Part shown: piece after piece, positions 4,210-64,000 of the stretch | How the letters are laid out: every line of letters starts with the position of its first letter | Position numbering within the stretch: the stretch's first letter is position 1 | Assembly: GCF_006345805.1 (NCBI RefSeq) | Contig: NC_043006.1 | Span: 100,068,001-100,132,000 of the forward strand | Direction of reading: 5' to 3' | DNA from: Octopus sinensis | Taxonomy: Eukaryota | Length of the DNA: 64,000 bases | Notes under the pieces: generated by a model | What the model was told of the DNA's origin: nothing | Database searches by the model: none | What the model saw: only the letters and a program-made list of their open reading frames with translations | Translations under genes and position numbers: made by a program

Positions 4210-5863
4210 TATATTCGTACTTCAAATAGATAGATAAATAAATGGCTAGAGACGTACATGTATAAATGCATACGTACAAAATAGCGCTAACAATATTAGA
4301 AATTCCAGGCGTTGAGGACCGTATAAAATGCTTTTGGGGCGATTTGTATTTCTTATTGCATAAATATGTCGACTCCTCTATCCTACGTTAATGACTGGTG
4401 TCTTCCTTCCCAAATACGAGACACATATTCTACCTACCAATGCAGCGTTATTCAATTCAGATATATATTTTACCATGTAAAATCTTTCTAGCACGAGCAT
4501 GGCTTAAATTGATCACAACATCATGACTAATACCCCATAATCAGTACTATGACACTTGTAGCTTATTTATAAACAACATAAATAATTTTCTCACGTTTCT
4601 TGGTCTTCGCATTGAAATCGGGATCTACTTCTGTGTTAGGAATAAAACCGTGGTGACCCGTCTATCGGTGAAATGAAACGGACACAAAATAAAAACACTA
4701 GGATGAAGGTCAGCCAAACTATTTCACAGCAAATCAGCTTCGACAGCAAGCGTCTTCCTATGTCGAAAATATGGCTATCGAAGATAGTAATTGCTTTCTA
4801 ACTCTTGTGATGCTTATCGATCATCTCCGAACACTGAGAACCGGCCAAAATCTGCCAAAAGAGAGATCGAAAATAATGTAAACATACCGCTGCCGCCATC
4901 ATTAAACTCTCATATATCTCTACATGTAACTGATTCTTTTCGAAATGCTCTGACGCTGAATATATTCAGGTTAGCATTTTGATATCACAGTTTCTAAAAG
5001 GAGTTTTTGCTGTTTTGTTTTCCCAAGCAATGGTTAAGCAGCAGGCTATTCTTTTACAAGAATTGAGAAAAATCCAACGGTTCTTAAATTAAAATTTATT
5101 GATGATTTAGTGATGTTGATGGATAACACATAGGATTGTGCGATGTTAATTACTGGGCAATTAATGCCATCATATACGTAGCTATCATTACTCCTAAATA
5201 ATATAGAGAAGAAACCTGCAGCGGATCTGATAAAGAAATTAGTACATGGAGTCAACTGAGATGGAAAAAAAACTTGAAGAATGTTGCATGGTTAACCACG
5301 TAATAAAATGTAAGGGTTTCAAACCTCAACAATTATATTTTATGCAAAAAAACTATACAAAAGACTACAGTGAATCTTCACGTGAATTTCTTTGAGGAAA
5401 TGTTGTTATTAATTGCACGAATTCATGACGCTCGGCGAAAATTTAGTTACACTGGAAAAAATTTCGAGGATCTCCGTATAATTTGCAAGTTTGCTTCTAA
5501 TCCACAGGTATTACAGAAGGAGATGAGGAAAGAAAACAGTACCGCCAAGAACACCCATTCTCTAAAATATCATGAGGCATTCTAATCTTGCATAATGAGA
5601 ATGCACTTAGAAATGACCTAATATTTGGAAACGTGTTCAACAGGTTGACACTCAACAGAAAATCAGTAATGCGTGTATCTAGAAGAACTATTTATCAATA
5701 GATAAACAAACCGAATTGTTGGCAGAAAACTAGTGACTCATCGCTTGCCTAAATATTATCCATAAGCTTTACACAAGATCCTTCAACGTACACTTCCAGG
5801 CTCAATGTGAGACCAGCAACACTGACTGAAGAACAGTCAGACGGAAGGAGGGAGTGTAGGGAT

Positions 5864-6480
5864 ATGCCGAACATTGTTCTGTCAGATGGCGGAAAATTCT
5901 GCTATATTTGTGGATGTTATACTTTACTTAAGTAGCGAAACAAAATCGCAAAATTTGTTAAGAAAGCTTATCTTTCTTACTTTGGCAGGAAACTGAGCCG
6001 GTACACCCCATATAGTGCGTAATTTATGTGCTGATAGATTGAAACTGTGATTGTTTCAAATAATTCAGTAGAAAGATTCCAGCTTAGACATGTGAGAGAA
6101 TTAAGGTTGGTGTGTTTGACGGACAACAGATTAGGTGGCTATTGCAGGGAGAACAGTTCTTGGAGACCATGAGTGGCGTTGAAAAAGAAGCATGAAATTG
6201 TTTTACTGCAATTATGTCTGGCCTCCTAAGGAGCAGGAAATAATAAAATTATGAAGAGATTGTGCATACCTAGTTAACCAGTTTTCGAGCACTAGGATGC
6301 AGCATGAGTATAAACGCGCATTTCCTGCTAATCATCTGGACTAGTTCACTGAAAACATACTACTATAAATTATGGGTAAGGAGAAATATTCTACCAATAC
6401 ATCGAAACCATAGAGTCTTAGTATGAAGGCAGGTGGAATGCAATCAAGATGGCTGACTACTACTGGCCTCTACAAACATT
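5864..6480 (+). pseudogene. Internally deleted Chapaev3-like (CMC) DNA transposase relic
   Basis: KFCYICGCYT, FVKKAYLSYFG, IKVGVFDGQQIR, FRALGCSMSINAHFL, YEGRWNAIKMADYYW in broken frames. Confidence 0.65.
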
Positions 6481-6719
6481 CTCTCATAATGCATAATATT
6501 CATGCAAAGCAGCAACTGAAATGTTCACTGTTTGAGTTGCTGAAATTCCAATTTCACAGAAATATCTAACCTAAGATATGTAATTAAAGACTTTGTGTAA
6601 TATACTTGTTAAACAAAAAAAAAAACGTACTATTTGATTTGCGTTAGCTTCTTATTTCAATATTGCATTTAAGGTCAAAATTAACATTTTAGAGTAATAT
6701 AGGAATTCCTCTTTAACAA

Positions 6720-8480
6720 AAATTTGACACGATAGAAAATTTCTGAGGCCATTTCTGAACTCAGCACCATCAAATTAGGTAAGGCCAATTGCAAACAGTA
6801 AGACAACAAATTGTTTTCGAAATTGTTCCCAGTGTTATCAATAAAATAAGAAAACCAGCTGACCAACCCAATTACTTACGGACAAAAATACAATTGTGCT
6901 TATTCAGAGTAAGATGTAGAAAAAAAACCTGGACATGTTAAAAGAAAGCTGACTGTAGTTCTGAAACCAACACGCCAATTTTAGTTTAAATCCAATGAGA
7001 AGGCAAACACAACTGAAATAATGTTCAAATTTATTCTCCTACAAAAATCCAGTGGCCTCACCTTAGGGTCTGCAACTGCATGAGATACAAATGTGATTCA
7101 TTTTTTTTTTCGCTTGGTTTTTGTGGACGGCTTGAAGAATTATTTCTAAAATTGTTTATAATGCCAAAAGCAAACTGAGTTAATTACCTTTCAGCTGATG
7201 CAGTAATGTAATTTAGCAAAGAAGAAATACGTTCATATTTGATTACTGAAATTGCAAAAATCAGTTCCCCAAACAAAGAAAAAGCTGTGCATCAGCGATT
7301 TTCCTATCACTACTCTTCCTCACAAGGTTTACTACAAAAACAAGCCATTGACGAAAACATGTACGGAGTTTCTGGGAATAAAGTTAAAGTGACCTGAGAA
7401 TATTTCACCAAACCTAATTAAAATAAATTCGTAGTGGAAATCTACCCTTTATCCCACAATTAATTTTAAACTCCAGCGTTGATGTCACCATCTCGGATAC
7501 TTGACTGGTCTGTAGAAGAAATCCACTGCATGGACATTAAAACCCGCAAGATGCTGATCTCAACTTGAATTGTGTTTAGAAATAGTGATATCAGTAAGCT
7601 CTACGTAAAAAGAGAGAAAGGAAGCAGAGTCTTGATATTTGTTCAAAGAGTTTTTGAGTGTTTTATGGCGCCTCTCAGACAGCACCCGTTGAGCAACAGC
7701 AGCAAAATTAAATATATAAATCTATTGCTAAAAAAGTGCAGCATACCTTCCGGCGGCAGTGACAAATGTTGATCTCCCATACAAATCCAAAGCAACGGGG
7801 CTAACATACATCAAAGATCTGGATGTGATATGCACATCATATCAAAATGGCCATGCACAGTTATGTTTACTGAAGACTTGACGATTGTGCTAATATCGAT
7901 AACATCGCTTGGACTTGGAATCTGTACCTTGCATCATACTTCGAAGTTTATGCATCTGCAGTCGAAGTGCACGGGATTGCTACAAAATACCTCACGAACA
8001 AAATACACAGAGAATTCCTTGGATCCTCAAGATGCAACCGAAACTATCGTAAACACATTTCTTTCGAACACAACATACATGTGATTAGGAGTTGCCCAAA
8101 GATGTCATCACGATACTACTTCCGAATTCAGTATGGCGTTTAAACTAAAACGATGTACAATGCTTCCGATAAAAGTGGGATTTATAAATTTAAAGAATCC
8201 CGTTGTTACTAAATACATGCATAAACACCAAATCAAGGAATATTGTTTGGTGATTTCCATGACAACGTTTACTAAGTGCAAGCATAACATGTCGGATATT
8301 GTTTTTTTTGGAATAGACGAGGAAAAGTATGTACCGCTAAAGTGATCATCTCTCTTGATGTGGATAATTATTCGAAAATCATTAAGAAATTGGGATAACT
8401 ACAGACCACTGCTTAGAAAACTCCAGCTCGTACGGCCAGACTTAAAACCCAAATGTATACCAAAAAAGTAATGCGTTGCA
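6720..8480 (+). pseudogene. Highly degenerate R4/Dong-clade non-LTR relic (RT end to restriction-like endonuclease)
   Basis: FVDGLK, ILDWSVEEIHCMDIKTRKML, NSDISKLYVKREKGSRVL, KHNMSDIV. Confidence 0.65.
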
Positions 8481-9509: not shown

Positions 9510-9830
9510 GGAGGCGCAATGGCCCTGTGGTTAGGGCAGCGGACTCGCTATTGGAGGATCGCGGTTTCGATTCCCAGACCGGGCGTTGTGTGTGTTTATT
9601 GAGCGAAAACAATTAAAGTTCCACGATGCTCCGGCATGGGGTGGTGGCGACCACTGTTGTACTCTTTCGCTTCAAATTTCTCTCACTCTTTCTTCTTGTT
9701 TATTGAGTTACACTACGATGGACTGGCATCCCGTCCAGCTGGGGGGAACACATACGCTATAGAAACCGGGAAACCGGGCCCATGAGCCTGGCTAGGCTTG
9801 AAAAGGGCGCATAAATAAATAAAATAATAA
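9510..9830 (+). mobile_element. tRNA-derived SINE family B, 3' tail variant 1
   Basis: Head ggaggcgcaatggccctgtggttagggcagcggactcg..ggtttcgattcc. Tail has gatggactggcatcccgtccag and an A-rich end. Confidence 0.85.
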
Positions 9831-10556
9831 GTACCATTCCTCAAGTAGACGGTATGATGTAATTTAATCGTGATTTGGTTGGAATGTCCAGAAGACGGTG
9901 CCTCCATATGTAGACATCCTTTATTCATTCCAACGAAACGAGCTAATCAGATATTGTTGAAGAAAAATTATAAATAATAATTCAGTAATAAGGGAATCCA
10001 GGATCATCTAATGGTACTGTTGTGTAATTTGTGAGATTAAGAACCTGGTATAATTAATGCTAAAGCAAAAGCTATATTGGTTAAACAAAAACAGATGAGC
10101 TGTGATCATCCTTATCAGGCCATAAAGAAGATCGTAAAGTCATTGCTCAATTCATTTTTTTATAAGCAGACAGTTCATTGCAGTTCCAATCTTAGAAAAA
10201 AATATCAGAGCACATGAAGTTCACACCCAGAAAATGGGGGAAAAGAGAAGGATATGTCCTTCAGTATAAACGTCATCTTTGACAGAAAGTATAAAGAAGG
10301 AGGAGTAAACTCAAGTAGGAAAATCGACAAAATGAGCGTAATTCTATACAACCATCAGAGCATGCTGTAATTATTACAGTTGGTAAGGGGTCCATTTAGA
10401 AGGGGAACGACTATGAGACTGTCATATGAGTTCGTACGTGTGCATGTATTGTGCGCCTGTGTAATGTGTGCACGTGTATATACACACACAGACACATGTA
10501 TATACATATGTATGTATAAATATATATGTATCTCTCTCACTCTCTCTCTCTCTATG

Positions 10557-10601
<45 letters not shown>

Positions 10602-10659
10602 TTGTATGTGTGTGTGTGAGTATATGCAGACAGACAAGGACACGGGCAGTCATAAAGTG

Positions 10660-10985
10660 TAACGGCCCTTTCGTTCACGATTGACCATGGGATTGCACTT
10701 AAAAAGTTCCCCTCTAAGGCACAAGTCCGTGCAAGCTTCTTTGTAGAAGACCTGCAGTCGCCCCTATATATTAGTCTGCCCACTCCACACTAATGGTATT
10801 GTCCAAGGGAAAGGCAAATGCCGACACAGCTTGGCACCAGTGACGTCGCAACTCATTTCTACTGCTGAGTAAAGTGGAGCAACGTGAAAATTAAAGTACC
10901 TTTCTCAAAAACACAACACACAGCCCGGCCCGGATATCGAAATCACAACCACATGATAGTAAGCCCGACGACCTAACTACTGAGT
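10660..10985 (-). mobile_element. SINE family D (CORE-like central region)
   Basis: Reverse complement matches 32330-32648 and 53785-54115 (ttggcaccagtgacgtcgcaactcatttctac). Confidence 0.8.
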
Positions 10986-11020
10986 CAAGCGTTCGTATAC
11001 ATATATTTATATATGTATAT

Positions 11021-11280
11021 GATTTCAAGGACAGTCTCAAAGTCTCTCTCAAAGACTTCTCCATCGGCACAGAGACTTGGGAGACACTTGCTGCCGACCG
11101 CTCATCCTGGCCAGAGCCACCTGCAGCAATAGCACAGCCCCTACCCACTTCTGCCCCACCTGTGGGAGGGGCTTCCTTGCCCGGATAGGCCTCACCAGCC
11201 ACCTCCAGTCTCATAGCAGCAATTCCATCAAATGATGTCAATGGTCATCTTCGAACACGAAGGACGAACGAGAAGAAGAA

Positions 11281-11311
<31 letters not shown>

Positions 11312-11404
11312 AAGAAGAAGAAGAAGAAGAAGAAGAAGAAGAAGAAGAAGAAGAAGAAGAAGAAGAAGAAGAAGAAGAAGAAGAAGAAGAAGAAGAAGAA
11401 GAAG
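11021..11404 (+). mobile_element. RTE (BovB-like) LINE 3' fragment with (GAA)n tail
   Basis: FKDSLKVSLKDFSIGTETWETLAADRSSW and CPTCGRGFLARIGLTSHLQSH. Short 3' UTR then (GAA)n. Possible TSD atatatgtatat (11009-11020 and 11405-11416). Confidence 0.85.
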
Positions 11405-13861
11405 ATATATGTATATATATACGTGTCTGCGGGTGTATGAAGGACGCTAGAAATTGACTATTGTATGTATGAGAATAATTTTCTCTACTGTAAATTGCAA
11501 TGAAACGCTTTCCCATGTTCAAATTTTGCTCCGAACATATTTAAACAGATTCATTATTTTCTGCATCTACACCTACCCTAATATACATAGATACATCCGC
11601 ACACACACACACATGCAGAGATACATATGTGTATGTATGTATGTATTATGTATATATATATACACATATATATATATATATATTTCTTCAAAAACTATGC
11701 CACTGTATGAAAAAAATTTATAACATTCTTCTGACATAATGACTCAAATATATATTTTTTAACCTTCTGTAGTTTTTTCACTTTTCACTATTTTCTCTCT
11801 CTCTATATATATATAAATATATATGTATACATAAATTTATATAAATATGTATAAGATCGTTATTTAAATACTGATCTTATCAGGTGGCCAACATGGGAAT
11901 GAAAACCTTCAAAGGTAATAATTGTTATTAAAATTATGATTTAAGGTATCTTAGAAGTACCACCACGCTGGAAATAACAGCTAAAACTTGAGTGTAAATA
12001 TTAAACATTAAATATTCATGCAGCACCAGGAGAGAAGACAAAGGACAAAATAAGCTAGCAAAAAGATTACTGGATAATTCCAGATCCCGGATTTCAGCGT
12101 GGTGATATCTCTTAGATATCCTAAATTATAATATAGAATCTGTTCAAATATGTTCGGAACAAAATTTGAACATGCAAAAGCGTTTCGTTGCAGTTTGCAG
12201 TAGAGAAAATTATTCAGGTACGTAAAATTGTCAACCACTAGCACCTCCATAGACAGGTAGGCGCGTTTTGAACTATTTAATCCTCCTCAGTACCAGATAG
12301 AGAATGAGACAGCTCTCAGCTGACTTGAACATTTTGACTTGTTTGTTCAAAATCACAATGTTATTTACTGATCGTGCGAGTAGGTCACATCACTATGCAG
12401 ACTTGTTCCGGCCTGGTAAGATAGATACGCTCTTAGATGTATATGAGCGTTCCTGTATGGGGTGAGATGCGTTTGTTTGATTAGCTTCGTCAGACAATCT
12501 GACGAAGTTTATCGCCGCTGAAACTTTAAATTAATTGACGAGGATTTTATAAGAATATTTTACACGTTTGTTAAACGATTTAAAATGCCTTTCATATAAT
12601 TATCTGTGTATGACAATGTACAAAGTACACGCATTAACGCACACACATATATACAAACTCGCATACACACATACACACAGACATGTATACACACACACAT
12701 ATAATATATATATATATATATATATAGATATATATATATATATATATATACATGTTTGTGTGTGTGTGTGATTGTAGCCTTATACATAAGTATTTATATA
12801 TAAAAATGTGATTACATGTATTGAAGTATAGAAAAATATATATGCACATATAATCACACACATACACGGACACACACACCCGCACGCACACACACAAATG
12901 TAAGTATTCATATATGTATGTATGCATGTATATGCAAGCACTTTCTGATTTAGAATTTTGTTTCAAATTCAACAGACGTTTCCAGATATTGCATGGTTGG
13001 AACGTCGTGTGTTTAGCGGGAGTCCATATTTGGAGCGATAATAGGAAGTCATCATTTAACTGAGCTAATCATCTTCCTTACATATGGATGCGTAGATAGG
13101 GAAACTGGCAGGCTGATATATACGCGAATGTTAAATAACTGTGTTTATGTGTAAATTATTTAGTAAATGTGATTATACGCAGGTATTTTATGCTATGTGA
13201 ACAGAACCGTGTATGACTTATAAAGCAAAAACGCTAAAACAACAAGGCTGATTACATTTCGTAAACAAAAACGAAAAACTATTCTAAATATGCTTGTAAC
13301 AATGTAATTTGAGGAAGACTGGGAATAATGCATACTTGTTCAATCTACGTAGGTAGATGCATCAAAAACAAACTAGATTAATGCACATATAGGCAATGAC
13401 ATCTGCAGCAACTTGGATTGCAGTTAATGATGGTTATATTGTGCCCCACAACCATCATCACCACTGTTCTCAATATGTTCTCATCATCACCATCGCCCTG
13501 AACACTATCATAATCACCATAATTCTTTTCCACCACGAACCTTATCAATGTGTTGATGATGCGAATTATGATGATATTTATAATGATATTTATAATATGC
13601 TGGTAATATTTTCTTATCTTTACTTTTTGTCAATGAAATTAGCCCCGTTGCAACTGGTGTATGGCAGAGCAAGTATGGAGCCAAATTGTCTGCAATTCGC
13701 TATTGTTAGGAAGATCATGAATGCTCATTTGATATCTAATATATATACTGTAATGTTACATTTTGACATATCTTTCCTATAAACATTGTCTACTGGGCAT
13801 GTCCTTTGATGTGTATGTATACACACACACACACACACACACACATGTATATATGTATATA

Positions 13862-15294: not shown

Positions 15295-15521
15295 TGAGGG
15301 GTTGCTAAAAAGTTCCTGGCTTTAAGGCCACGCGACAGGCCAGATTGCATGCCCCACCTTCTGAGTTCTTTTCCAATCCTTAACAAAGCCTTACAGAAAC
15401 TGAAGGGCTGCTACAATATGTATATGAATCGGACAGAGGAATATAGTTAATATAGTCGTAATTGACTGAATCTGGGGTTTTCAGTTTTTCCCAATGCTAT
15501 TAAATTTTCAGCCCCCTATCG
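15295..15521. mobile_element. Mariner-type MITE, copy 2 (tandem duplication)
   Basis: Near-identical to 14926-15168, and the downstream flank is duplicated too. Confidence 0.7.
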
Positions 15522-15573: not shown

Positions 15574-15614
<41 letters not shown>

Positions 15615-16016
15615 TTTACTCTCTTTTACTCTTTTACTAGTTTTAGTCATTTGAATGCGGCCATGCTGGAGCACCGCCTTTAGTCGAGCAACTCGACCCC
15701 GGGACTTATTCTTTGTAACCCCAGTACTTATTCTATCGGTCTCTTTTTGCCGAACCGCTAAGTGACGGGGACATAAACACACCAGCATCTGTTGTCAAGC
15801 GATGTTGGGGGGGAGGGACAAACACAGACACACAAACATACACGCACACACACATATATATATATATACATATATACGACGGGCTTCTTTCAGTTTCCAT
15901 CTACCAAATCCACTCACAAGGCTTTGGTCGGCCCGAGGCTATAGCAGAAGACACTTGCCCAAGATGCCACGCAGTGGGACTGAACCCGGACCCATGTGGT
16001 TGGTAAAGAAGCTACT

Positions 16017-18154
16017 TTATTTCAAAACATTTGCCATAAAGGCAGTACACAGATTAAGTTAGCTTTGCGGGCTGGACGAGGACATTAATGAGGTGAATGA
16101 TAACGAAAGAAAGATAAGGATGGGAGAAGACAGAAAGCGCCCGCCGACTTTTGCTTCTCTAAAACATTGTTCTTTTTAAAAAGATAAACAGAAAACGAGG
16201 TATTAAACTTCTTACAATTTTTCAATTTTTGGACTTAAGTCCATTACTAATAATACATATCGTCCTCGAAATAGCTTGTGCCCGCGCCCTCCACCATCAA
16301 CCACGCCTCCCTCAGAACGTAGTCAAGTTCCGAGTTCGCGTCGCCCGGGACCAAGTTATAACCTTCATTGAGCTCCTTTAGTCCTACCGTCACGTCGAAC
16401 GCCACGGCCTCCACAGCTACCTGCGGAGGCCATTCGGGGTCCTGTGTGAAGGCTAAAGGTGCTCCCTTGTAGTGCTCTTCCATCACCTTTTCAATTTCTC
16501 CTCCTCTATAGAAGGGGACCAATACATTCAGTTCTTTCGTTGGCGGCACAGTTCTCGCCAACGGTATTCCTTCTCTTGTCGGTGGCACAACCCCAACCGA
16601 CGTAGTTCCGCGACATTCTGGTGCTACACTGACAGCCGGTAATGTCCCGTTTTTCTTCCTCATTTTCTTTTTTTTCTTTCCCTTTTCAACTAAGGGAGGG
16701 TGCATCTCCTCCGTGGCTGGATGATTCGCCTTCCTCTCCTCATCCCTATTATCCTTTGGTGAGCACCCATTGTTGCTCACCTTCCTCTTTCGGCCTCTGT
16801 TTGAGGAGTCCTCTGCTTTCTCAGCCGTTATCGTTCCCTCTTCTAGAGGGGTTTTACTTAACTGTTCCCGGATCCTATTTTGTTCCCGAGGACAGTTCTT
16901 CTTTATGTGGCCGGACTCCAAGCACCGATGACACTTAGGGGGGCGACCCTCAAGCATCACCGGGTACCTGCACCCGGCCATTTTCAAAAAATCTGGAAGA
17001 ACTAGATTGGCTGATTGGGTCCACAGGGTCAAAATTGCTTTCGACCCAACCCAAGCAGCCCCAGGAAGACCTTTTACATTGAGGAGCTTAGTTTCGCTGT
17101 CACCCAGACCCCGGCGGATAGTCTCCTCTATCCATTCGGGTTCTATGTCGGGTAGCAGTCCGCAGATCCAAGCTTTCATCAATTTCTTTTTTTTGTACGT
17201 GGGCAGGAATAAGATTTCCTTACCCTCCAAGGGTTTGCTAGCAAATTTGCAAGCCTCTTCAGGGGTGTCAAATAGCAACCACACCGTTGCATATTTGACA
17301 CCCCTGGAAATGAATTTAATTGTTGGCAAATACTCTTCCAACTCCTCCTCAATTGCCGTCTTTTCGAATAGGGCGATGGTGTCGAGTGCCTTGGAGTAGG
17401 TTCTCAACACCACCGTCCTATCTTCACGGTCTTTTAACCACTTTTTATGTGGTATGATTTCCCACTCCAAAATTTTGTTATTTTTCATTGCCATGTTTTT
17501 TTTAAAATATATTCAAATTAAACTCAAAAAGCAGGAAGAAAAAAGTTCAAAAGTCCAAATAAAATTTGATAGATTTTTGAAAAAACAAAAAGGAGAAAGC
17601 ACAACAGATTGGAGGAAATCAACGGAAAGTCGCAATAAAGAAAAAAAACAAAAGGGGGGGGGGGTAAATGAAGTTCAAAAGAAAGTTAATAAACAGAAAA
17701 AAAACACAGCAAAAATATTCTGGCCTTGCGGCACTCCCGGCCTGGGTTAAACCTGGAACGCCGCAACTGCAACACAACCTCCACAAAAATGGGTCCGAAA
17801 TGTAATCCAATAGTGGCTTATTTTTATAATTTTCTTGCGAAGTAGTAAAACACAAGCAAACAAATTAATTTTTGCGGAGGGGCTACACCTCCTCAAAAAG
17901 CACAATTCTCACTAAAGAGTGAGACCTTAGACACGACAACAGGCAGAGAAATATATCTGAAGTAAAGTGAAGTTTATTACCCGCAAAAAAATATTAATGC
18001 TAGATAACGTTAACTGCTAAATAACATTAAGCAAGCAATAAACTTCACTATGCTTCTAAAAATACAGAACGTGTTACCTGTCGCCGAGTCAAAAGTTCAA
18101 CATTTCACGTTCAAACACGTGACATTTGCAGGAGCAAAAAACAACACGTCTGTC
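16017..18154 (-). mobile_element. ORF1-only non-autonomous LINE-like element inserted in a SINE head, with target-site duplication
   Basis: Flanked by tggtaaagaagctact (16001-16016) and tggtaagaagctact (18155-18169). The SINE sequence resumes on both sides. The 3' end reads ...ttttgaaataa. About 660 bp 5' UTR and 230 bp 3' UTR. Confidence 0.85.
16247..17494 (-). CDS. Non-LTR retrotransposon ORF1/gag-like nucleic-acid-binding protein (L1/Tx1-type), 415 aa, intact
   Basis: Uninterrupted 415-aa ORF with EGRPPKCHRCLESGHIKKNCP (C-x2-C-x4-H-x4-C knuckle), followed by a basic/low-complexity region (KKKKKMRKK). No RT or endonuclease ORF follows it. Confidence 0.85.
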   Translation of the reverse strand: MAMKNNKILEWEIIPHKKWLKDREDRTVVLRTYSKALDTIALFEKTAIEEELEEYLPTIKFISRGVKYATVWLLFDTPEEACKFASKPLEGKEILFLPTYKKKKLMKAWICGLLPDIEPEWIEETIRRGLGDSETKLLNVKGLPGAAWVGSKAILTLWTQSANLVLPDFLKMAGCRYPVMLEGRPPKCHRCLESGHIKKNCPREQNRIREQLSKTPLEEGTITAEKAEDSSNRGRKRKVSNNGCSPKDNRDEERKANHPATEEMHPPLVEKGKKKKKMRKKNGTLPAVSVAPECRGTTSVGVVPPTREGIPLARTVPPTKELNVLVPFYRGGEIEKVMEEHYKGAPLAFTQDPEWPPQVAVEAVAFDVTVGLKELNEGYNLVPGDANSELDYVLREAWLMVEGAGTSYFEDDMYY

Positions 18155-18190
18155 TGGTAAGAAGCTACTTACCACACAGCCACTCCTTCG

Positions 18191-18246
<56 letters not shown>

Positions 18247-20943: not shown

Positions 20944-21175
20944 TGCTCACAAGGAGCTACACACAGAGGGGACAAACAAGGACAGACGAACGGATTAAGT
21001 CGGTTATATCGACCCCAGTGCGTAACTGGTATTTATTTAATCGACCCCGATAGGATGAAAGGCAAAGTCGGACTCAATGGAATTTGAACTCAGAACGTAG
21101 CGGCAGACGAAATACCTGTTTCTTTACTACCCACAAGGGGCTAAACACAGAGGGGACAAACAAGGACAGACAAAC
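20944..21175 (-). mobile_element. SINE family C with duplicated 3' segment
   Basis: gaccccgataggatgaaaggcaaagtcg ... gaatttgaactcagaacgt. The segment ca..ggggctaaacacagaggggacaaacaaggacaga occurs twice. Confidence 0.8.
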
Positions 21176-21599: not shown

Positions 21600-21753
21600 G
21601 ACGGGCTTCTTCATGTTTCCGTCTACGAAATCCACTCGCAAGGCTTTGGTCAGCCCGGGGCTATACTAGAAGACACTTGCCCAAGGTGCCACGCAGCGGG
21701 ACTGAAGCGGAACCATGTGGTTGGTAAGCAAGTTTCTTACCACTCCTGCGCCT
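21596..21753 (-). mobile_element. SINE family A, 5' part only
   Basis: Matches head and body of the 23170-23579 copy up to the internal (TA)n. Confidence 0.85.
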
Positions 21754-21990
21754 ATGTGTGTATATATATATATATAATATATATATATATAAGAGATAAT
21801 GGTGTCATTGAGACCCAAAGGGGTCAGGTAATGCTGAATAAGTGCTATAGACAGACCATAGTTAAGTTCCAGACTCGGTAATAAAGGGTTCAACGTTGGT
21901 TCTTTGTCAACGTGTGTATATATGAATTTTTGCTTAATGAGATAAAACAAACCAAGGCTGTATAGATATTAGAGCATTTATAGGTAGAAG

Positions 21991-24024: not shown

Positions 24025-24262
24025 AAGGCGGCGAGCTGGCAGAAGGGTTAGCACGCCGGGCGAAATGCGAAGCCGTATTTCGTCTGTCGATACGTTCCGA
24101 GTTCAAATTCCACCGAGGTCGACTTTGCCTTTCATCCTTCTCGGGGTCGATAATATTAAGTAACAGTTACGCACTGGGGTAGATGTAATCGACCTAATCC
24201 GTTTGTCTGTCCTTGTTTGTCCCCTCTGTGTTTAGACCCTTGTGGGTAGTAAAGAACTATAT
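24025..24262 (+). mobile_element. SINE family C, full length
   Basis: ggcggcgagctggcagaagggttagcacgccggg ... gagttcaaattccaccgaggtcgactttgcctttcatcc. Confidence 0.85.
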
Positions 24263-34234: not shown

Positions 34235-34297
<63 letters not shown>

Positions 34298-34393
34298 ATA
34301 AAACGGTAAGATAACAAAAGAAAGAAAGAGACCTCAATATTATGTAAATAGAGGAAATTTATCTATACAATATGTTACATTACTCGGTAGTCA

Positions 34394-34456
34394 AGATAAA
34401 ACTCTGAGTTTCAGATGCCGAAGTGGAAATCCACAACACCATCTCTTCGGTTATCT
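34394..34456 (-). ncRNA. Type I hammerhead ribozyme motif (mirror copy)
   Basis: Reverse complement of 36572-36634. Confidence 0.75.
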
Positions 34457-34661
34457 GGCTATTTGAAAACGTTATGAAAAAATACCGTTAAAAAAGAAGG
34501 GAAATTACTCTGTTATAACTCTGCTTTGCCTGCGTACTTATACATCGCTCGCATTTTTCGTCATAAAAATTATATAAAAATACATAAAAATATATAAAAA
34601 TATATATAAAAATATATAAAATATATAAAATCTTCTTGGGACATAACACAGAAAGCATGTT

Positions 34662-35746
34662 CTATCCGTTTTCTTTAGGGGACCAAAAACGTAACAGAAA
34701 TTTAGTCACATGTGGGCATGATCCGAAAAGCTCTGTCCTTGTATTTAGACATGTGGTAGGGTCTAAGTTGCTTTTCCAGATAAGCCATCTCTCCATGTCG
34801 CATAAACCGCACCTTCCGCTGCCGTTAGTATAGGGCTTACATCTGGCCAAAATCTTCCATTGTATGTTATAATCGACACCTTTATCTCTTAAAGACCAAA
34901 TATGATTGGATAATTGTGTCGCTTTTCTTTTGTTCCAGTGCCTAAAGCTCAAAGTGTGGTTATTGAACCTGGCCTTGAAATTACCCTCTGTCAGGCCCAC
35001 GTATTTCTTCGTCGAAACGGTGTCTTTAGTGGTTATAGAGTTTACGGTAGCTTCATATATGATGGTCTTGGACATGCAAGCTCCATTTAGCGGGCACAAT
35101 TCTTTATTCCTGCATGAACAGCTGTTTTCTTCTTGTGTTTTTTGTATGTTATGATTGATTATGTTTTTAAAATTGGTAGTTGAACTAAAACTAATTTTTA
35201 AATTGTGTCTATTGAAGAGTTTCCTATAAGCATGGTTAACTGGAAAATGTCTATCTATCAGTGCTAGGAAATATTTACCTATATTGAAGGCCACCTCGGG
35301 TGAGTAAGGGGGCGTAAACCAAATGACCTTCCTATTTCTATTATTCCTTTTCCTTACTTTTGGGCTGGTGATAGGTGTATATTTTATTTTTTCGCTAAAA
35401 CCACTATCTTTTAAAGCTTTATTATAAACTGGGGCAACGCTATTGAAGATGTCCTCATTAGATGAGAGGCTAGAAATCCTCTTACTAATATTTTTAACTA
35501 AATTTTTGAATACTATAGGGCGATGGCATGAACCTACATTAATATAACTTAGTCTATCATTGGGCTTCCTATAAGGCTTATAAATATTACTATTAAGATC
35601 TAAGGAAACGTCTAAGAAATTGACAACCGTCAGGTTAGTGTCTATAGTTATACTAAGTCCGAAGTGTTTCATTAACTGGATAATATCCTTCCTAAAACGA
35701 TCTTGTGCTGGTCCATTTGTATTAGCTGTTAAGGCGAGGGCATCAT
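34662..35746 (-). CDS. Penelope-like (Naiad-like) RT C-terminus plus GIY-YIG endonuclease, 5'-truncated
   Basis: The frame extends upstream of the listed Met as DDALALTANTNGPAQDRFRK. Contains VNFLDV, IIYEA..YVGLTEGNFKARFNNH and C-terminal CGLC..E..LN..CPH. Confidence 0.9.
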
Positions 35747-35779
35747 CTTTACAAAAATGATGCCCTCGCCTTAACTGGC

Positions 35780-36366
35780 CATTTTCCAGTTAACCATGCT
35801 TATAGGAAACTCTTCAATAGACACAATTTAAAAATTAGTTTTAGTTCAACTACCAATTTTAAAAACATAATCAATCATAACATACAAAAAACACAAGAAG
35901 AAAACAGCTGTTCATGCAGGAATAAAGAATTGTGCCCGCTAAATGAAGCTTGCATGTCCAAGACCATCATATATGAAGCTACCGTAAACTCTATAACCAC
36001 TAAAGACACCGTTTCGACGAAGAAATACGTGGGCCTGACAGAGGGTAATTTCAAGGCCAGGTTCAATAACCACACTTTGAGCTTTAGGCACTGGAACAAA
36101 AGAAAAGCGACACAATTATCCAATCATATTGGTCTTTAAGAGATAAAGGTGTCGATTATAACATACAATGGAAGATTTTGGCCAGATGTAAGCCCTATAC
36201 TAACGGCAGCGGAAGGTGCGGTTTATGCGACATGGAGAGATGGCTTATCTGGAAAAGCAGCTTAGACCCTACCACATGTCTAAATACAAGGACAGAGCTT
36301 TTCGGATCATGCCCACATGTGACTAAATTTCTGTTACGTTTTTGGTCCCCTAAAGAAAACGGATAG
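35780..36366 (+). pseudogene. Inverted copy of the PLE GIY-YIG coding region with a 1-bp deletion frameshift
   Basis: ORFs 35930-36139 and 36178-36366 repeat the C-terminus of the minus-strand ORF. catattggtc replaces catatttggtc. Confidence 0.85.
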
Positions 36367-36571
36367 AACATGCTTTCTGTGTTATATCCCAAGAAGATTT
36401 TATATATTTTTATATATTTTTATATATTTTTTATATATTTTTATGTATTTTTATATAATTTTTATGACGAAAAATGCGAGCGATGTATAAGTACGCAGGC
36501 AAAGCAGAGTTATAACAGAGTAATTTCCCTTCTTTTTTAACGGTATTTTTTCATAACGTTTTCAAATAGCC

Positions 36572-36634
36572 AGATAACCGAAGAGATGGTGTTGTGGATT
36601 TCCACTTCGGCATCTGAAACTCAGAGTTTTATCT
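36572..36634 (+). ncRNA. Type I hammerhead ribozyme motif (U4C core variant)
   Basis: agataa-CCGAAGA-[stem II]-GAAA-ctcagag-TT-ttatct. Stem I is 6 bp, and stem III is near-palindromic. Confidence 0.75.
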
Positions 36635-36730
36635 TGACTACCGAGTAATGTAACATATTGTATAGATAAATTTCCTCTATTTACATAATATTGAGGTCTC
36701 TTTCTTTCTTATTTTATCTTACCGTTTTAT

Positions 36731-36824
<94 letters not shown>

Positions 36825-50642: not shown

Positions 50643-50954
50643 ATAATTCTAGACAAAACCACTATTTTAAAACCAAACAAGGAAAGACTTAATCAATACA
50701 TAAAATTTTAATATAAATTAAATAAACCGCCACTACAAATGTTTCATGTCTGCTACCGACAATCTTCAGGTGGATTTTCGATCTTCTAATCAGTATCAAA
50801 TTTGATACTGATTAGAAGATCGAAAATCCACCTGAAGATTGTCGGTAGCAGACATGAAACATTTGTAGTGGCGGTTTATTTAATTTATATTAAAATTTTA
50901 TGTATTGATTAAGTCTTCCTTGTTTGGTTTTAAAATAGTGGTTTTGTCTCGAAT

Positions 50955-54914: not shown

Positions 54915-56640
54915 ATATATAAGAAAATAGTAAAGAGTGAAAAAACGACAGAAGGCTTAAATGTTAAAAAATATATATATTTGCGTCAAAATGTCTGGAG
55001 AATATTGGAAAAAATTTTTTTCCCTCCTTAAAATGACATAATTTTATAATTTTTAAAGAAATACCGGTTTCGCAGTTAGCTCTTCAAATTTCTTGTGACT
55101 TAATGTTTATTTTTAATAACGTAATCCTTGTATTTTTGCTACGGAGAGTTCTAAATAAGGGAAAGTAGTGAGTGATTTCTTCCGGTGTAAGGGAGATAAT
55201 CGCTTAAAAAAATTTTTTTCCCTTTAGTGTGAATTTCTCTGTATTATTGAGTTCGGATAGTTGAGTCTGGGTTTGTACTTTTCAATGAAGAATGTTTCCT
55301 TATTTAGTCTAATTTGTGATGATGATCCGAAAGCACATTGGTAAAATGGAAAGATTAAAAATTGTGGTTGAAGTTGCTTTGCGCATTTCTCAATGTGTTC
55401 ACTAAAAGGTATCATTCTATATTCTGGGAATGCAATCTGTTGTCGATGCAGTGTGCATCTACGTCTGAGTGATAGTCCCGTGGACCCCACGTAGTCTTGG
55501 TGGCAGCCCGAGCATTTAATGACATAAATTATGTTTTCAGAGGCACAAGTAAAGTTAGATTTGATCTTGAATTTCTGTCCCTCTTTAAAGAAGAATTCTG
55601 ATCCTTCCAATAGGTTAGGACATGTTGCACAGTTCGATCTACCACATTTTTTTACTTTTGCATCCGTAATTTTAGAAGACAATTTTGCCTTTGTGAGAAT
55701 CTTTTTAAGTGATTTAGGCTGTTTGTAGCTTTTAATGATTTGGTGTATGTTTATAATTTCCTTTAATTTGGGGTTTTTATGAAGTATTGGTAAATTCTGG
55801 GTGATGATGGTGAAAGCTTCTTTGTTTCTGGGGTTGTATGTAGATATGTAAGGTAGTATTTTCGGGGAAGGTGTGTTGTTGTGTTGAACTTTTCTTAAAG
55901 TTTCTATGTTGATTTCTGTTGCACGTCTGATCCCATCCTCTATGAGTTGAGTTGGGTAATATCTGTCAATTAAGGTGTTTTTGAGTTCTTGCAGTCTGAA
56001 GTTCCTGGTATTTTGTTCTGACACTATTGTGCATATCCTTCTTCAAAGGTTGAAGGGGATGCTTGTTTTAGTGTGTCTTGGGTGGCATGAACTAAAAAGA
56101 AGGTATTGTTTGGCGTCTGTGGCTTTGTAGAAAATGTCTGTTTCTATTTTAAGGTTAATTTTTTTTAATTAGTATATCCAAGAACGGGAGTTCCTTTTGG
56201 TTGTATTCCATTGTGAACTGTATATTTGGGTTTATGCTGTTCAATAGGTTTTTAAATTTTAAGAGTTTATCTGTGTTTTCATTCCAGAGAATAAAACAAT
56301 CGTCCAAGAATCGTTTCCAGTTCTCTTTTATGTATTGAGAGAGGGGGTTTCCAAAGATTGATAAGGATTCCTGGTAAATGGTTATTTCCATGTATCCCAT
56401 TGTTAAGTTCGCAATGACTGGTGCTGCCCTTGTACCCATAGCAATTCCGGATTTTTGACGGTAAAATGTATTGTCAAACATGAAGTGGTTATTGTGTAGG
56501 ATGAATTCAACTGATTTAGTAATGAATTCTTTACTGATCCTTTTTGGTATTTCTTCCGGAAATTGGTCTTCTGTCGTTTTTTCACTCTTTACTATTTTCT
56601 TATATATTCACCCACGTGCTTTACCAAACAAACTTTCTTA
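54915..56640 (-). mobile_element. Neptune-like Penelope element, 5'-truncated, with inverted 3' tail at the 5' junction
   Basis: RT and GIY-YIG coding. The 40-bp 54915-54954 is the reverse complement of 56568-56607. (TA)-rich flanks. Confidence 0.85.
55224..56580 (-). pseudogene. Neptune-like PLE RT-GIY-YIG ORF, broken by an A-run frameshift (~56160) and an in-frame TGA (~56045)
   Basis: GIAMGTRAAP, WKRFLDDCF, LPFLDI; Cys linker KCGRSNCATC; IIYVIKCSGC..YVGST..LRRR..HR. Confidence 0.9.
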
Positions 56641-60380: not shown

Positions 60381-62737
60381 TTGTCTGTGTGTGTGTGTGT
60401 GTTCGTGTATGTGAGTATGTACATAATTTATAATATATATAGAGAGAGAGACAGAGAGATCATATCATATCATATATATGTATGTAAATACAAATGCTAT
60501 ATGCTTAAGTATAGACGTACGTATATAAAGAAATGGAGAGAATGTAATTGTTTCTATAGTTTGATTACGCAAGATGATAAATACCGAGGAGGCGCACAAT
60601 GGGATTGTGCAACAAGCCAATGACCTGGCGCAATAGTCAAGTTCGAGTTTAGGAAATCTGTGCCTGTTATATAAAGCTTTAATACACCAGTTGAATTTCT
60701 GTCTTCATTTCAACACGTAATGTGGTTAAAAACCCGCTCGCTAACCTGTCTAGAGACCCGATACTTATTATCAAATCGCGCAGAGTATTGAGTGTTGAAG
60801 TGGTGTGTGGAAGTACTCGAGAACCACAAAGCTTTCGGTAAAGTGTCGGCCTTCCAGCACACTTGAAAACTGCATGAATGTGTGTATATTTATGCGTGCA
60901 TGTTTGTGTGTGTGTATGTTGGATGTATTTAGCTATCTGTGTAGTTATATTAGAGACATTATATTATTCTGCTCCACAGTATGGAAATAAGAACAGTTAA
61001 ACATTGCAAAACAATTGCTCTGATATTGGTTCAGGCAAGAGAATATTAAAATTAAATAATTATTCCGTTATAAAAGTCGGCTGCCCTCTTAAGATCATTA
61101 GAGTAAATGAAGAGTGGATAAAAATATATGTATACATCATTAATTAGTTGTTTACATATATTGACTCTCTGCCATTTCAGTTGCCGATATAGTGATATTT
61201 TTTTGCTTCTCTTTACAGTTAATATTAACATGCGCATGCTGCTATGACTATCATCAATAAATAATCATTTCAAAGTAGAATCATTCCATAATTTTATTCG
61301 TAGTACATATGTTATTGTTTATGAACGAATTACATAGACGAGAGTTATATTATCGCTGTTTTGTGTCTGGTCCGTTGCGTGTGATACAACACTCTAGATT
61401 ATCATCTCCTGATGGCTCATTGAGAAAGTTCGGATAGCGGGACTGTTACACGTTATGTTCATAATACACCGGAACAAACGGCCAGGCTTACACACATACA
61501 CAAATACACGCACACACACGCACACACACGCACACACACACGCTCATATATATATTAAGACGACTTAAGAGAATTCTAAGCACTGCTATTAGAAGTTGAC
61601 CAGCAATGTTTCCTTTCCGAATGTTTATCTTTACATCGTTTATCGTATAACTAACATGAAATTGAAATTACAGTACATTACAACACCTATACTTTAATTC
61701 CATTACAATTACTATATTGCAACTTTGCCATTACTGTATGATATTCCATTTATGACATCACTATGTCATTACAACTATTTGCCTCCAAACATGTGTTGCG
61801 ACCACGATAACACAATCTGTATTTTTGCGACTATGCTATACAATGATTGTATAAAATACAAGCTCAGAAAATAAATGTTTGTTTCTTTCTCATTTACTCG
61901 CTAGTCCCGTGATATATTGTCTACACTTTTCTTTTTCCTTTTTTTTTTCATAATCAATTTATTTCATCATTCACTCTCTTCAGTTTTGGAAGCTGACAAT
62001 GTATCTGTTGTTTTAGTTAGATTGGTCGTTAACAGACTTTGATTATGTTCGCTGTACGTGACTCCAACTAGGATGGTACATATTCCATTACTTCTATATA
62101 AATTGTATCACTGCTAATAATATGTGTGGAAGCTATATTTGTAAACGACTCATGGATGTTTCATAGAATTTCTTTTAAATTTCTTTTATAATCACATTAA
62201 CCTCAAGCGTACAGCTTGCACCCAGATCAGAACAGTCTCTATTTTGTAGGCTTTGAAAGTATCAGAAATCATATTTTTATTTGGTAATTTATTTTAAAGC
62301 TTCATACTAACACAGTGAAAAGCAATTGGGTTGTTTTATTTTATGACGTTGTTAAGCTCATAATCATAAGATCTCGATTTCCATTACTGTACAGTCCCAT
62401 CGTACAGTCCCATCGTTTCACATTTTCCAGCCTACACAACAGAAAAGGAGTACCGCCTAGCGTTGATGAAGCCGCCTCTCCGTTCATGTCTAAGTCTGCT
62501 CGAGGCAGACATAGTAAATCATAAAATATTCAATGCGTACGTGATACAAAATACCTGGTCCATACCCACTTGCGAAAGACGGGTAACTTTTGGCAACCTA
62601 AATTCTTACAGCGAATAGTAGCTCCTGAAATCTGATAATATAATAATACATTCTTTCAGGCCATGTTCATATTCTCTTTGACATACACATTCTCACATTG
62701 ACATAATCACATTCTCTTCCAATCCAGAGTGACCTAT

Positions 62738-62966
62738 ACTCTTACTCTTTTTACTCTTTTACTTGTTTCAGTCTTTTGACTGCGGCCATGCTGGAGCACC
62801 GCCTTTAGTCGAGCAAATCGACCCCGGGACTTATTCTTTGTAAGCCCAGTACTTATTCAATCGGTCTATTTTGCCGAACCGCTAAGTGACGGGGAGGTAA
62901 ACACATCAGCATCGGTTGTCAAGCAATGCTAGGGGGACAAAAACAGACACACAAACACACACAGGC

Positions 62967-63019
<53 letters not shown>

Positions 63020-63162
63020 TACGACAGGCTTCTTTCAGTTTCTGTCTACCAAATCCACTCACAAGGCATTGATCGGCCCGGAGCTGTAGCAGAAGACACT
63101 TGCCCATGATGCCACGCAGTGGGACTGAACCCGGAACCATGTGGTTGGTTAGCAAAGCTAAT
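62738..63162 (-). mobile_element. SINE family A body, interrupted by the second ORF1 element
   Basis: Tail, body and B box are present. The sequence breaks at the same site as at 16016. Confidence 0.9.
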
Positions 63163-64000
63163 TTATTTCAACAATTTTGCCACTAGGGCAGTACACAGAG
63201 TAGCTACGGGCTGGACAAAGACATTAAAGGATGATGGTGGTGGTGGATGAAGATGGTGATGGGAGAAGTCAAAAAGCGCCCGCCGACTTCCGCTTCTCTA
63301 AGACATTGTTCTTTTTTTCAATAAGTTCAATTTTCTTTTTTCCTTAGTTTCAATAAATCGACATGAGGTTGCAAACCTCTTACACGAAGGAGGCACTAAA
63401 ACCTCTTACAAAGTTCTTTTTTTTTCATTTCTTTTGCCACAAGGGCAGTATATGCATTCACAAAAATTCTCCCTGTCAGGTCCCCGAAGCAAATTGTCTT
63501 GCCGCCTGCAGACAACTCTGCGGCGACAAGTCGAGGCCTGCAAAGAGAAAAGTAAAATGTTTCCTCTCAAAGGTCTTTGTGACCCTTGACAAAATGTTTT
63601 CCGTTACTACCTCCGCAGCTACCCGCGGAGGCCATAACGGACTCCTTGAGCTGACCGTGTCCTTGCGTTCTCGGTCACCCAAGCCATTCAAAAACTTTTC
63701 CAGCTTCCCTCCCTTGTGGTAAAGGAGGAGAAACAACTCCTCTTCACAGGAAGGGACCTCACACTGATCCGTCAGTGGCACACTTTCCACTGACTGAGCA
63801 CTGTCCGCGGGTGGCACACGTCCCACCCGCGGCTCCGTCGGCGACACAGAAACGTCAGCCGTCCGACCTCTTTTTCTTTTTTTTTTCCTCTTTTTTTTAG
63901 AGGCTGCTAGCCCGGCGGGCTCCTTCGGCAGACACGGGGGGTCGCTATCCTCCTCCTCCGTCTGTACGTTCTTTGGTGAGCAACCATTGTTGCTCACCTG
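63163..64000 (-). mobile_element. Second ORF1-type element inserted at the same SINE position (5' part outside window)
   Basis: 3' UTR blocks shared with 16017-16180 (ttatttcaa..tgcc-n5-ggcagtacacaga; gggagaag..agcgcccgccgactt..gcttctctaa.acattgttcttttt). Junction follows SINE tggttagcaaagctaat (63146-63162). Confidence 0.8.
63476..64000 (-). CDS. C-terminal half of a diverged paralogue of the ORF1 protein at 16247-17494 (open at window edge)
   Basis: Shared motifs VSNNGCSPK, poly-K tract, (Y)xGGx(I/L)EK and WPP(Q/R)VA(V/A)E(A/V)V. Confidence 0.8.
   Translation of the reverse strand, partial: QVSNNGCSPKNVQTEEEDSDPPCLPKEPAGLAASKKKRKKKRKRGRTADVSVSPTEPRVGRVPPADSAQSVESVPLTDQCEVPSCEEELFLLLYHKGGKLEKFLNGLGDRERKDTVSSRSPLWPPRVAAEVVTENILSRVTKTFERKHFTFLFAGLDLSPQSCLQAARQFASGT

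Follow-up and report, generated by a model that had tools for sequence, protein, structure and literature searches.

A putative ORF1-only LINE derivative at a fixed site of an abundant SINE in Octopus sinensis

Half-LINEs, target-specific LINEs and the octopus insert

HAL1 of mammals is a derivative of the long interspersed nuclear element (LINE) L1 that consists of the first open reading frame (ORF1) only, as summarized in the passage on HAL1 in PMC5753468, which cites Smit 1999 and Bao & Jurka 2010. LINEs of the Tx1 clade target other transposons (DNA and long terminal repeat (LTR) elements), small nuclear RNA (snRNA) genes and microsatellites, namely, Tx1L is found in Tx1D, Tx1-Mar in Mariner-N4_AMi, Keno in U2, and Kibi/Koshi in microsatellites, while the non-autonomous crocodilian SINEU shares the target of Tx1-Mar, which was taken as a sign of trans-mobilisation (PMC4494074). 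The present study concerns a 2138-bp insert, designated c1, at positions 16017–18154 (minus strand) of a stretch of Octopus sinensis DNA of 64,000 nucleotides (contig NC_043006.1, positions 100,068,001 to 100,132,000), referred to as the window, whose numbering is used below. The insert is probably a non-autonomous element that derives from an octopod L1/Tx1-like non-LTR retrotransposon, retains ORF1 only and inserts site-specifically into an anticodon-arm-like hairpin of an abundant short interspersed nuclear element (SINE). Descriptions of half-LINEs have so far concerned mammalian L1, and the Tx1-type LINEs with specific targets have been described as autonomous. Both themes are known; what is new is their combination in one family, in a cephalopod and with a SINE as the target, and the element is not a new kind of element.

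The octopus element resembles HAL1 as a non-autonomous LINE derivative that has kept ORF1 alone, presumably receives the ORF2 protein in trans and persists as a family (the same passage of PMC5753468). The ORF1 protein of HAL1, however, belongs to type II (coiled coil, RNA recognition motif (RRM) and C-terminal domain; Transposase_22), whereas that of the octopus element belongs to type I, with two RRMs followed by a CCHC knuckle (RRM-RRM-CCHC). HAL1 has an L1-like tail and dispersed insertions, whereas the octopus element has no poly(A) tail and occupies one SINE site. Consequently, with no Transposase_22 match and an RRM-RRM-CCHC fold, it is analogous to HAL1 and not a member of that group. 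It shares with the Tx1-clade LINEs a fixed position in repeated sequences, including transposons, and an RRM/CCHC-type ORF1, and one of its relatives (L005, see below) lies in a (TTA)n microsatellite, similarly to Kibi/Koshi; those LINEs, however, are autonomous (ORF1 plus an ORF2 with apurinic endonuclease (APE) and reverse transcriptase (RT)), whereas the octopus element has no ORF2 and its target is a SINE. SINEU is also a non-autonomous retroposon and shares the target preference of its Tx1-type partner, but it is short and non-coding with an snRNA-derived head, whereas the octopus element is 2.1 kb long and encodes an ORF1 protein. There is also a superficial likeness to the ingi/RIME pair of Trypanosoma brucei, where RIME is a deletion derivative of ingi, since a long coding insert lies between the two halves of a short repeat; in the octopus locus, however, it is evident from the target-site duplication (TSD) and the divergence pattern that the insert entered a SINE that already existed. 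The 2026 repeat annotation of O. vulgaris contains 13 recently active L1-Tx1 families (PMC13282606); a term search of that paper found none of the words 'ORF1', 'non-autonomous' and 'nested', and the SINE passages considered here contain nothing on SINE targeting.

Insertion into the SINE and independence of the copies

The insert has the same sense as its host SINE and splits it between the A-box-like motif TGGCTGTGTGG (18172–18182) and the B-box-like motif GGTTCAGTCCC (15976–15986), in agreement with the preliminary description of this DNA; the first ~39 nt of the SINE lie at 18155–18193 and the remainder at 15613–16016. Read on the minus strand in the sense of the SINE, the locus begins with the SINE head (18170–18193), which aligns to the heads of the five uninterrupted SINEs of the window, followed by the upstream TSD copy (AGTAGCTTCTTACCA, 18155–18169) and the 5′ untranslated region (UTR) of c1 (660 nt, 17495–18154), which is partly alignable to the copy L002 described below. 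The intact ORF of 415 amino acids (aa) plus stop occupies 16247–17494 and was assigned to a LINE ORF1 protein from the ORF scan, domains, homologues and substitution rates. It is followed by a 3′ UTR of 230 nt (16017–16246), which has no poly(A) tail and ends in ...TTTTGAAATAA, by the downstream TSD copy (AGTAGCTTCTTTACCA, 16001–16016), identified by flank comparison, and by the 3′ part of the SINE (15613–16000), comprising the B-box-like motif, the body, an internal tract of (TA)n(TG)n and a tail with GTAAAAG repeats at its end. No second long ORF was found in the insert, and tblastn with the ORF2 of a related LINE gave no match, indicating that no RT or endonuclease is encoded; thus, the ORF scan and tblastn confirmed the earlier statement that the 2138-bp insert carries one intact 415-aa CCHC ORF and no RT.

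The direct repeats flanking c1, TGGTAAAGAAGCTACT (16001–16016) and TGGTAAGAAGCTACT (18155–18169), are the same but for one A and represent a TSD of 15/16 nt with the SINE sequence AGTAGCTTGCTTACCA. When the flanks of c1 were joined, the SINE became colinear with the five uninterrupted copies of the window. In the sense of the SINE, the duplicated target, AGTAGCTTCTT(T)ACCA, comprises the loop and the 3′ half of a GGTAAG/CTTACC hairpin situated between the two boxes. Both repeats have C where the other copies have G or A, and none of the other SINE copies of the window has this variant (in SINE sense, AGTAGCTTCTT versus AGTAGCTTGYT or AGTAGCTTACT in the remaining copies); the upstream repeat carries the same private CT variant as the downstream one and is one T shorter. 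The private substitution common to both repeats supports a true duplication of the sequence of this particular SINE copy. A true TSD had previously been argued from a base that both repeats were said to lack. This is correct for the repeat at 18156–18169, which is one base shorter than the uninterrupted copies, but not for that at 16002–16016 (ggtaaagaagctact), which is equal in length to the uninterrupted copies (ggtaaacaagctact) and differs from them by a substitution; the duplication is therefore better supported by the shared private substitution than by the missing base.

The window, whose cephalopod-like DNA abounds in microsatellites of the types (TA)n and (TG)n, contains many copies of one SINE of ~450 bp, and a 15-mer around the B box occurs in it 9 times compared with 0.55 times expected by chance. 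Two of the seven SINE targets of this type are occupied, and five are uninterrupted. The A- and B-box-like sequences, which are motif matches only, are ~50 nt apart in the uninterrupted copies and 2.2 kb apart in the SINE interrupted by c1, and a T6 run (element nt 15–20), the first of 26 runs of at least four T, lies 15 nt into the insert; judging from the box separation and the T6 run, the SINE hit by c1 is most likely dead as an RNA polymerase III unit. As to the tRNA origin previously ascribed to this SINE, the box motifs were found, whereas ARAGORN called no tRNA in the window and Rfam gave no tRNA match at the gathering score, nor at E up to 10 on the intact SINE head. The derivation from a tRNA is thus our own reading of the box motifs and of a cloverleaf remnant seen by eye, with GGTAAG/CTTACC as a putative anticodon-like stem. 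It should be noted that most copies of the target SINE have (TA)n upstream in the SINE sense (5′ flanks at 18194+, 21760+, 31490+, 40535+ and 59530+) and that all of them carry the internal (TA)n(TG)n tract; a preference of the SINE itself for (TA)n as a target is possible.

The sample comprised four copies of the element, two in the window (c1 and c2) and two at other O. sinensis loci (L001 and L002). c2 is a diverged copy cut by the end of the window (63163–64000, minus strand), in which the C-terminal 174 codons of the ORF remain open (63476–64000, from ORF and protein alignment) and are followed by a 3′ UTR of 313 nt (63163–63475, from the alignment of c1 and c2). It ends in ...GTTGAAATAA directly before ATTAGCTTTGCTAACCAACC, at the same SINE nucleotide as c1, and the 3′ part of its host SINE (62737–63162, minus strand) begins with ATTAGCTTTGCTAACCA, the target position being identical to that of c1. 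The identity of c1 and c2 is 35% at the protein level in the ORF C-terminus and 77% over 163 nt in the most conserved stretch of the 3′ UTR, and synonymous sites of the ORF are saturated (number of synonymous substitutions per site, dS, 1.85). A search of 5.8 billion proteins revealed only two O. sinensis gene models as close relatives. L001 is a 77% identical copy, whereas L002 is 76% identical and decayed by stops and frameshifts; the two are located on separate chromosome-scale records (CM016886 and CM016865). Their 5′ junctions read ...GTAGCTTGCTTCC / TGTGCATGCG in L001 and ...GAAGTTTGCTTCC / ACTGCGCATG in L002 (the slash marks the junction), and in both the SINE head extends to ...GCTTGCTTCC, where the 5′ UTR of the element begins. 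Thus, the same SINE nucleotide forms the 5′ and/or 3′ junction in all four copies (both junctions in c1, the 3′ junction in c2 and the 5′ junction in L001 and L002). The 3′ parts of L001 and L002 were lost to later rearrangement, so these loci are uninformative on ORF2. With two in the window and two more in O. sinensis, the copies examined do not fit the single-copy host gene or retrogene that the preliminary description had considered as the opposing case. A RefSeq model at L002 (10001–36638), P0002 'K02A2.6-like', joins the first ~46 codons of the decayed copy to an integrase (rve) exon located elsewhere, which makes it a chimeric, repeat-based gene prediction; the family is flagged as a repeat that standard annotation makes into chimeric gene models.

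The 3′ parts of the SINEs hosting c1 and c2 were 91.6% identical over 333 aligned columns, whereas random SINE pairs were 90–95.7% identical, and the nearest relative of the c2 host was an uninterrupted copy (95.7%). Since the host SINEs are as similar as random pairs and the inserts are far more diverged, the insertions are independent and site-specific, and it would follow that two already diverged subfamilies each entered SINE copies independently. The presence of SINE sequence at the same junction in all four copies, together with the variants GGCATC and TCTGCTA shared by the SINE parts beside c1 and c2, would also be expected if the SINE head, the insert and the SINE body formed one mobile unit, or if the SINE were its deletion derivative in the RIME/ingi manner, so that the association was inherited. 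This explanation is highly improbable, as the insert is bracketed by a 15–16-nt duplication of the SINE with a copy-private variant, the host SINEs are related to each other (92%) and to uninterrupted copies as described above, with the inserts far more diverged, uninterrupted SINEs outnumber occupied ones 5:2 in the window, and only in the uninterrupted form do the box motifs and the hairpin run without a break. The location of c1 and c2 within 47 kb of each other could indicate segmental duplication of one ancestral insertion as the source of the shared junctions; alternatively, the ORF could be a host gene or retrogene lying in a SINE by chance. Both possibilities are scarcely credible in view of the much greater divergence of the inserts than of the SINE flanks, the occurrence of L001 and L002 on two different chromosome-scale records, the decay of one copy by stops and frameshifts, and the fact that the homologues are LINE ORF1s. 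Accordingly, the composite-unit and segmental-duplication readings were rejected on the basis of the TSD and the divergence pattern, in favor of repeated insertion of a retrotransposon family at one SINE position.

The ORF1 protein, its LINE relatives and the absence of ORF2

The CCHC knuckle of the window ORF (CHRCLESGHIKKNC, aa 188–201; domain at aa 187–202, 16889–16936, delimited with Pfam and the family profile) matched Pfam zf-CCHC with an E-value of 0.0075, under the gathering score, whereas homologues of the ORF pass the Pfam cut-off, and the family profile matched retroviral (HIV-1) nucleocapsid knuckles in PDB at ~1e-6. Pfam searches with the ORF, with its C-terminal 137 aa and with the c2 fragment revealed nothing besides this weak knuckle, Transposase_22 (type II ORF1 proteins) had no match in the ORF, and the PDB sequence search with the family profile returned CCHC knuckles and low-complexity matches only. 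A profile search of 1.84 billion representative proteins yielded 63 distant homologues, all matching the aa 12–316 region, and those with species names came from Octopus bimaculoides, O. sinensis, O. vulgaris and Argonauta hians. The C-terminal domain (~aa 330–415, 16250–16507), preceded by a basic low-complexity linker, was found in this ORF1-only family alone.

The AlphaFold2 model of aa 1–215, built from a 46-sequence alignment, had a predicted local distance difference test (pLDDT) score of 93.1 and a predicted template modelling (pTM) score of 0.77, whereas a model of the whole ORF from a 3-sequence alignment (pLDDT 33) was discarded. In a Foldseek search against PDB, the top 50 among the matches listed were all tandem-RRM proteins (Hrp1, hnRNP A1 UP1, NONO/SFPQ, IMP3 RRM12), with probability ~1, E ~6e-4 and low TM-scores (0.24–0.35), which suggests that the domain folds match and the inter-domain geometry does not. 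The model and these matches point to an architecture of RRM1 (~aa 27–100, 17195–17416), RRM2 (~aa 104–181, 16952–17185), CCHC knuckle, basic linker and family-specific C-terminal domain. On the strength of this model and of homologues located upstream of ORF2s with APE and RT, the window ORF is predicted to encode a LINE ORF1 protein of the RRM-RRM-CCHC type. According to the section of PMC5203782 dealing with the classes of Khazina & Weichenrieder, type I ORF1 proteins combine RRM and CCHC, as in plant L1 and Tx1-type LINEs; in the window ORF, the RRM fold and the CCHC knuckle after the RRMs are present and an adjoining ORF2 is absent. The ratio of nonsynonymous to synonymous substitution rates (dN/dS), which the preliminary description had proposed to compute among copies, was 0.18 over the RRMs and knuckle and 0.22 overall relative to an O. 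sinensis copy (Nei-Gojobori, dS ~1). Values of ~0.2 indicate purifying selection on the ORF1 protein during diversification of the family. The earlier view of a non-autonomous element that keeps its own ribonucleoprotein component was thus supported by the RRM-RRM-CCHC ORF1 protein, the lack of ORF2 and the repeated family.

Distant homologues of the window ORF were found directly upstream of an APE/RT ORF2 at four loci (L005, L006, L127 and L128), and the start of an ORF2 was found at L004. At L005 of O. sinensis (P0005), ORF1 (9965–11812) is followed by endonuclease and RT pieces up to 15113; L127 of O. vulgaris (P0007) is a tandem array of ORF1+ORF2 units; at L128 of Argonauta (P0012), ORF1 lies just upstream of the APE/RT ORF2; the marine metagenome contig L006 (P0069) has an Exo_endo_phos match (1e-12) and the start of RVT_1; and the Logan contig L004 has an endonuclease-like ORF2 start past ORF1, as read from the sequence by eye. 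The RT of the relatives, which carries zf-RVT, matched human L1 ORF2p at 7e-43 versus R2 at 1e-22; no PDB sequence matched the endonuclease piece of L005, and the names of the proteins retrieved with a relative's ORF2 as the query were not clade-informative. As their RT is closer to human L1 ORF2p than to R2, the relatives appear to be an L1/Tx1-like group, the RT being L1-like in a comparison that does not separate Tx1 from L1, and c1 itself having no RT. Precise insertion into a repeated target, a Tx1-type trait, is present, with four of the four copies at one SINE position; the window element may belong to the Tx1 clade.

Several features of the relatives were observed in their own right. 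The L005 element is a full-length but broken ORF1+ORF2 LINE with (TTA)n on both sides (9722–9777 and 15345–15380) and looks microsatellite-targeting. L127 contains three head-to-tail full-length ORF1+ORF2 units with a period of ~5.28 kb (ORF1 at ~1935, 7214 and 12498). L003 of O. vulgaris (~5640–7720) contains one copy of a ~2.1-kb unit with a single RRM/CCHC-type ORF of 379 aa (P0008) and (TA)n on both sides, in which ORF2 queries gave no tblastn match; this unit may represent another ORF1-only family, independent of the first and with a target of its own.

In both copies with a visible 3′ half, c1 and c2, the ORF stop is followed by a UTR of 230–313 nt and the end of the element, without ORF2; the case of most copies carrying an ORF2, named earlier as the one that would make c1 a one-off deletion, was not observed. 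The stretch right after the ORF stop is homologous between c1 and c2 (TGTAAGARGTTT...), which suggests one old loss of ORF2 shared by two deeply diverged subfamilies. The main rival explanation is that ORF1-only copies are recurrent by-products of a full-length SINE-specific LINE, arising by internal deletion or by splicing out of ORF2 in the manner of spliced L1 insertions, with selection acting on the master element. The spacer between ORF1 and ORF2 in the relatives (200–400 nt) is compatible with a 3′ UTR of 230–313 nt composed of this spacer and a terminal UTR, purifying selection on the ORF fits this explanation equally well, and a conserved splice site would produce the same homology past the stop. 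It is nevertheless considered unlikely, since two subfamilies with saturated synonymous sites both lack ORF2 in their visible 3′ halves, the homology just past the stop suggests one old loss and not repeated accidents, and an ORF2 was seen in none of the four copies. A long-standing ORF1-only family thus remains the preferred interpretation.

The 3′ end, the possible route of mobilisation and other repeats of the window

Between c1 and c2, conservation is stronger over the last ~170 nt of the element than over the coding C-terminus. A hairpin with a 4-bp stem and a 5-nt loop (TGCC-TTTAT-GGCA, 16032–16044, minus strand) lies near the 3′ end of c1 and is followed by an A-rich stretch, and the motif is also present at or near the 3′ end of the autonomous full-length LINEs L005 and L127, in L003 and in two further repeats within the window. 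Stem sequences vary (TGCC/GGCA, AGGC/GCCT and GCCC/GGGT), and covariation analysis of eight sequences revealed 93.8% of cells paired, with three of the four pairs changed on both sides; none of 500 shuffles reached 93.8%, and slid registers gave at most 53%. This shared 3′ motif is likely a handle for recognition of the RNA by a related ORF2 protein. A second, internal hairpin motif (ACTGCCCTTGTGGCAAAAGAAATGAAAAAAAA) was found in c2 at 63423–63457 (minus strand), ~25 nt past the ORF stop, where c1 has a gap; it may have been left behind by an older and shorter 3′ end or by a template switch. The two other window repeats (21117–21151, minus strand, and 24225–24259, plus strand) carry the CCCCTCTGTGTTTAG(A/C)CCCTTGTGGGTAGTAAAG motif of LINE 3′ ends. 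The first of them is located ~540 nt downstream, in the SINE sense, of a SINE variant with the same head (~21694–21760) and a different body; the motif may be the tail of that variant, which may itself owe its mobilisation to this LINE group. The conserved 17-mer AAGTCGGCGGGCGCTTT was matched exactly by at least 120 contigs in a scan of metagenomes, and these were interpreted as chance matches on GC-rich environmental contigs; one of these contigs (L007), compared with the element by BLAST, shared nothing past the 17-mer.

According to the proposed mechanism, the RNA of the element would be transcribed from its own 660-nt 5′ UTR and translated, and the ORF1 protein would coat this RNA in cis. 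The ORF2 protein (endonuclease and RT) of a related autonomous LINE would then recognise the shared 3′ end, trans-mobilisation being the presumed step, nick the bottom strand of the SINE at GGTA^AGTAGC and reverse-transcribe from the nick, with the terminal TAA of the element overlapping the TAA of the target. Cleavage of the top strand 15–16 nt downstream would give rise to the duplication, and the SINE copy that was hit would be inactivated.

A number of observations weigh against the proposed origin and mode of mobilisation. Of the four copies, both junctions are visible in one and the 3′ half in two, and an exact-protein look-up of the window ORF found no identical entry on record. Among the relatives, no autonomous element with the full 170-nt block of the 3′ UTR or with the SINE target was found; the full-length relatives share only ~25% ORF1 identity with the window ORF, and L005 is located in a (TTA)n microsatellite and not in a SINE. 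The shared hairpin stem is only 4 bp long and was derived from the very sequences tested, and the whole 3′ UTR folds no better than shuffles (z +0.55 and +1.08). It is conceivable, though doubtful, that the ORF1-only element itself determines the choice of target, through its C-terminal domain (~aa 330–415) or the 3′ end of its RNA, and acts as a protein-coding hyperparasite that redirects the endonuclease and RT of microsatellite-targeting LINEs to the SINE hairpin; if so, the family would be a third, long-lived level of parasitism, exploiting a LINE for enzymes and a SINE for the landing site. If a genome-wide census confirms the ORF1-only state and the SINE target, the family would offer a natural system for studying whether ORF1 protein supplied in cis helps a non-autonomous RNA to compete for ORF2 protein, how a 16-nt SINE site is recognised, and how far such insertions prune SINEs, which make up more than one-tenth of octopus genomes.

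Other features were identified in the window. At 55224–56024 (minus strand), an ORF of 266 aa matched GIY-YIG (E 0.0038) and Sir2 (E 0.0005), both under the Pfam cut-offs, and may represent the C-terminal portion of a Penelope-like element. The region 34260–36768 contains a near-perfect inverted repeat of ~1 kb with arms 99–100% complementary, and an ORF of 336 aa in one arm (34662–35672, minus strand) had no Pfam match; the repeat may have arisen by a recent palindromic duplication or reflect an artefact of assembly. At 50666–50935, there is a 135-nt inverted repeat without a spacer, 95% complementary, which forms a palindrome with a perfect center.

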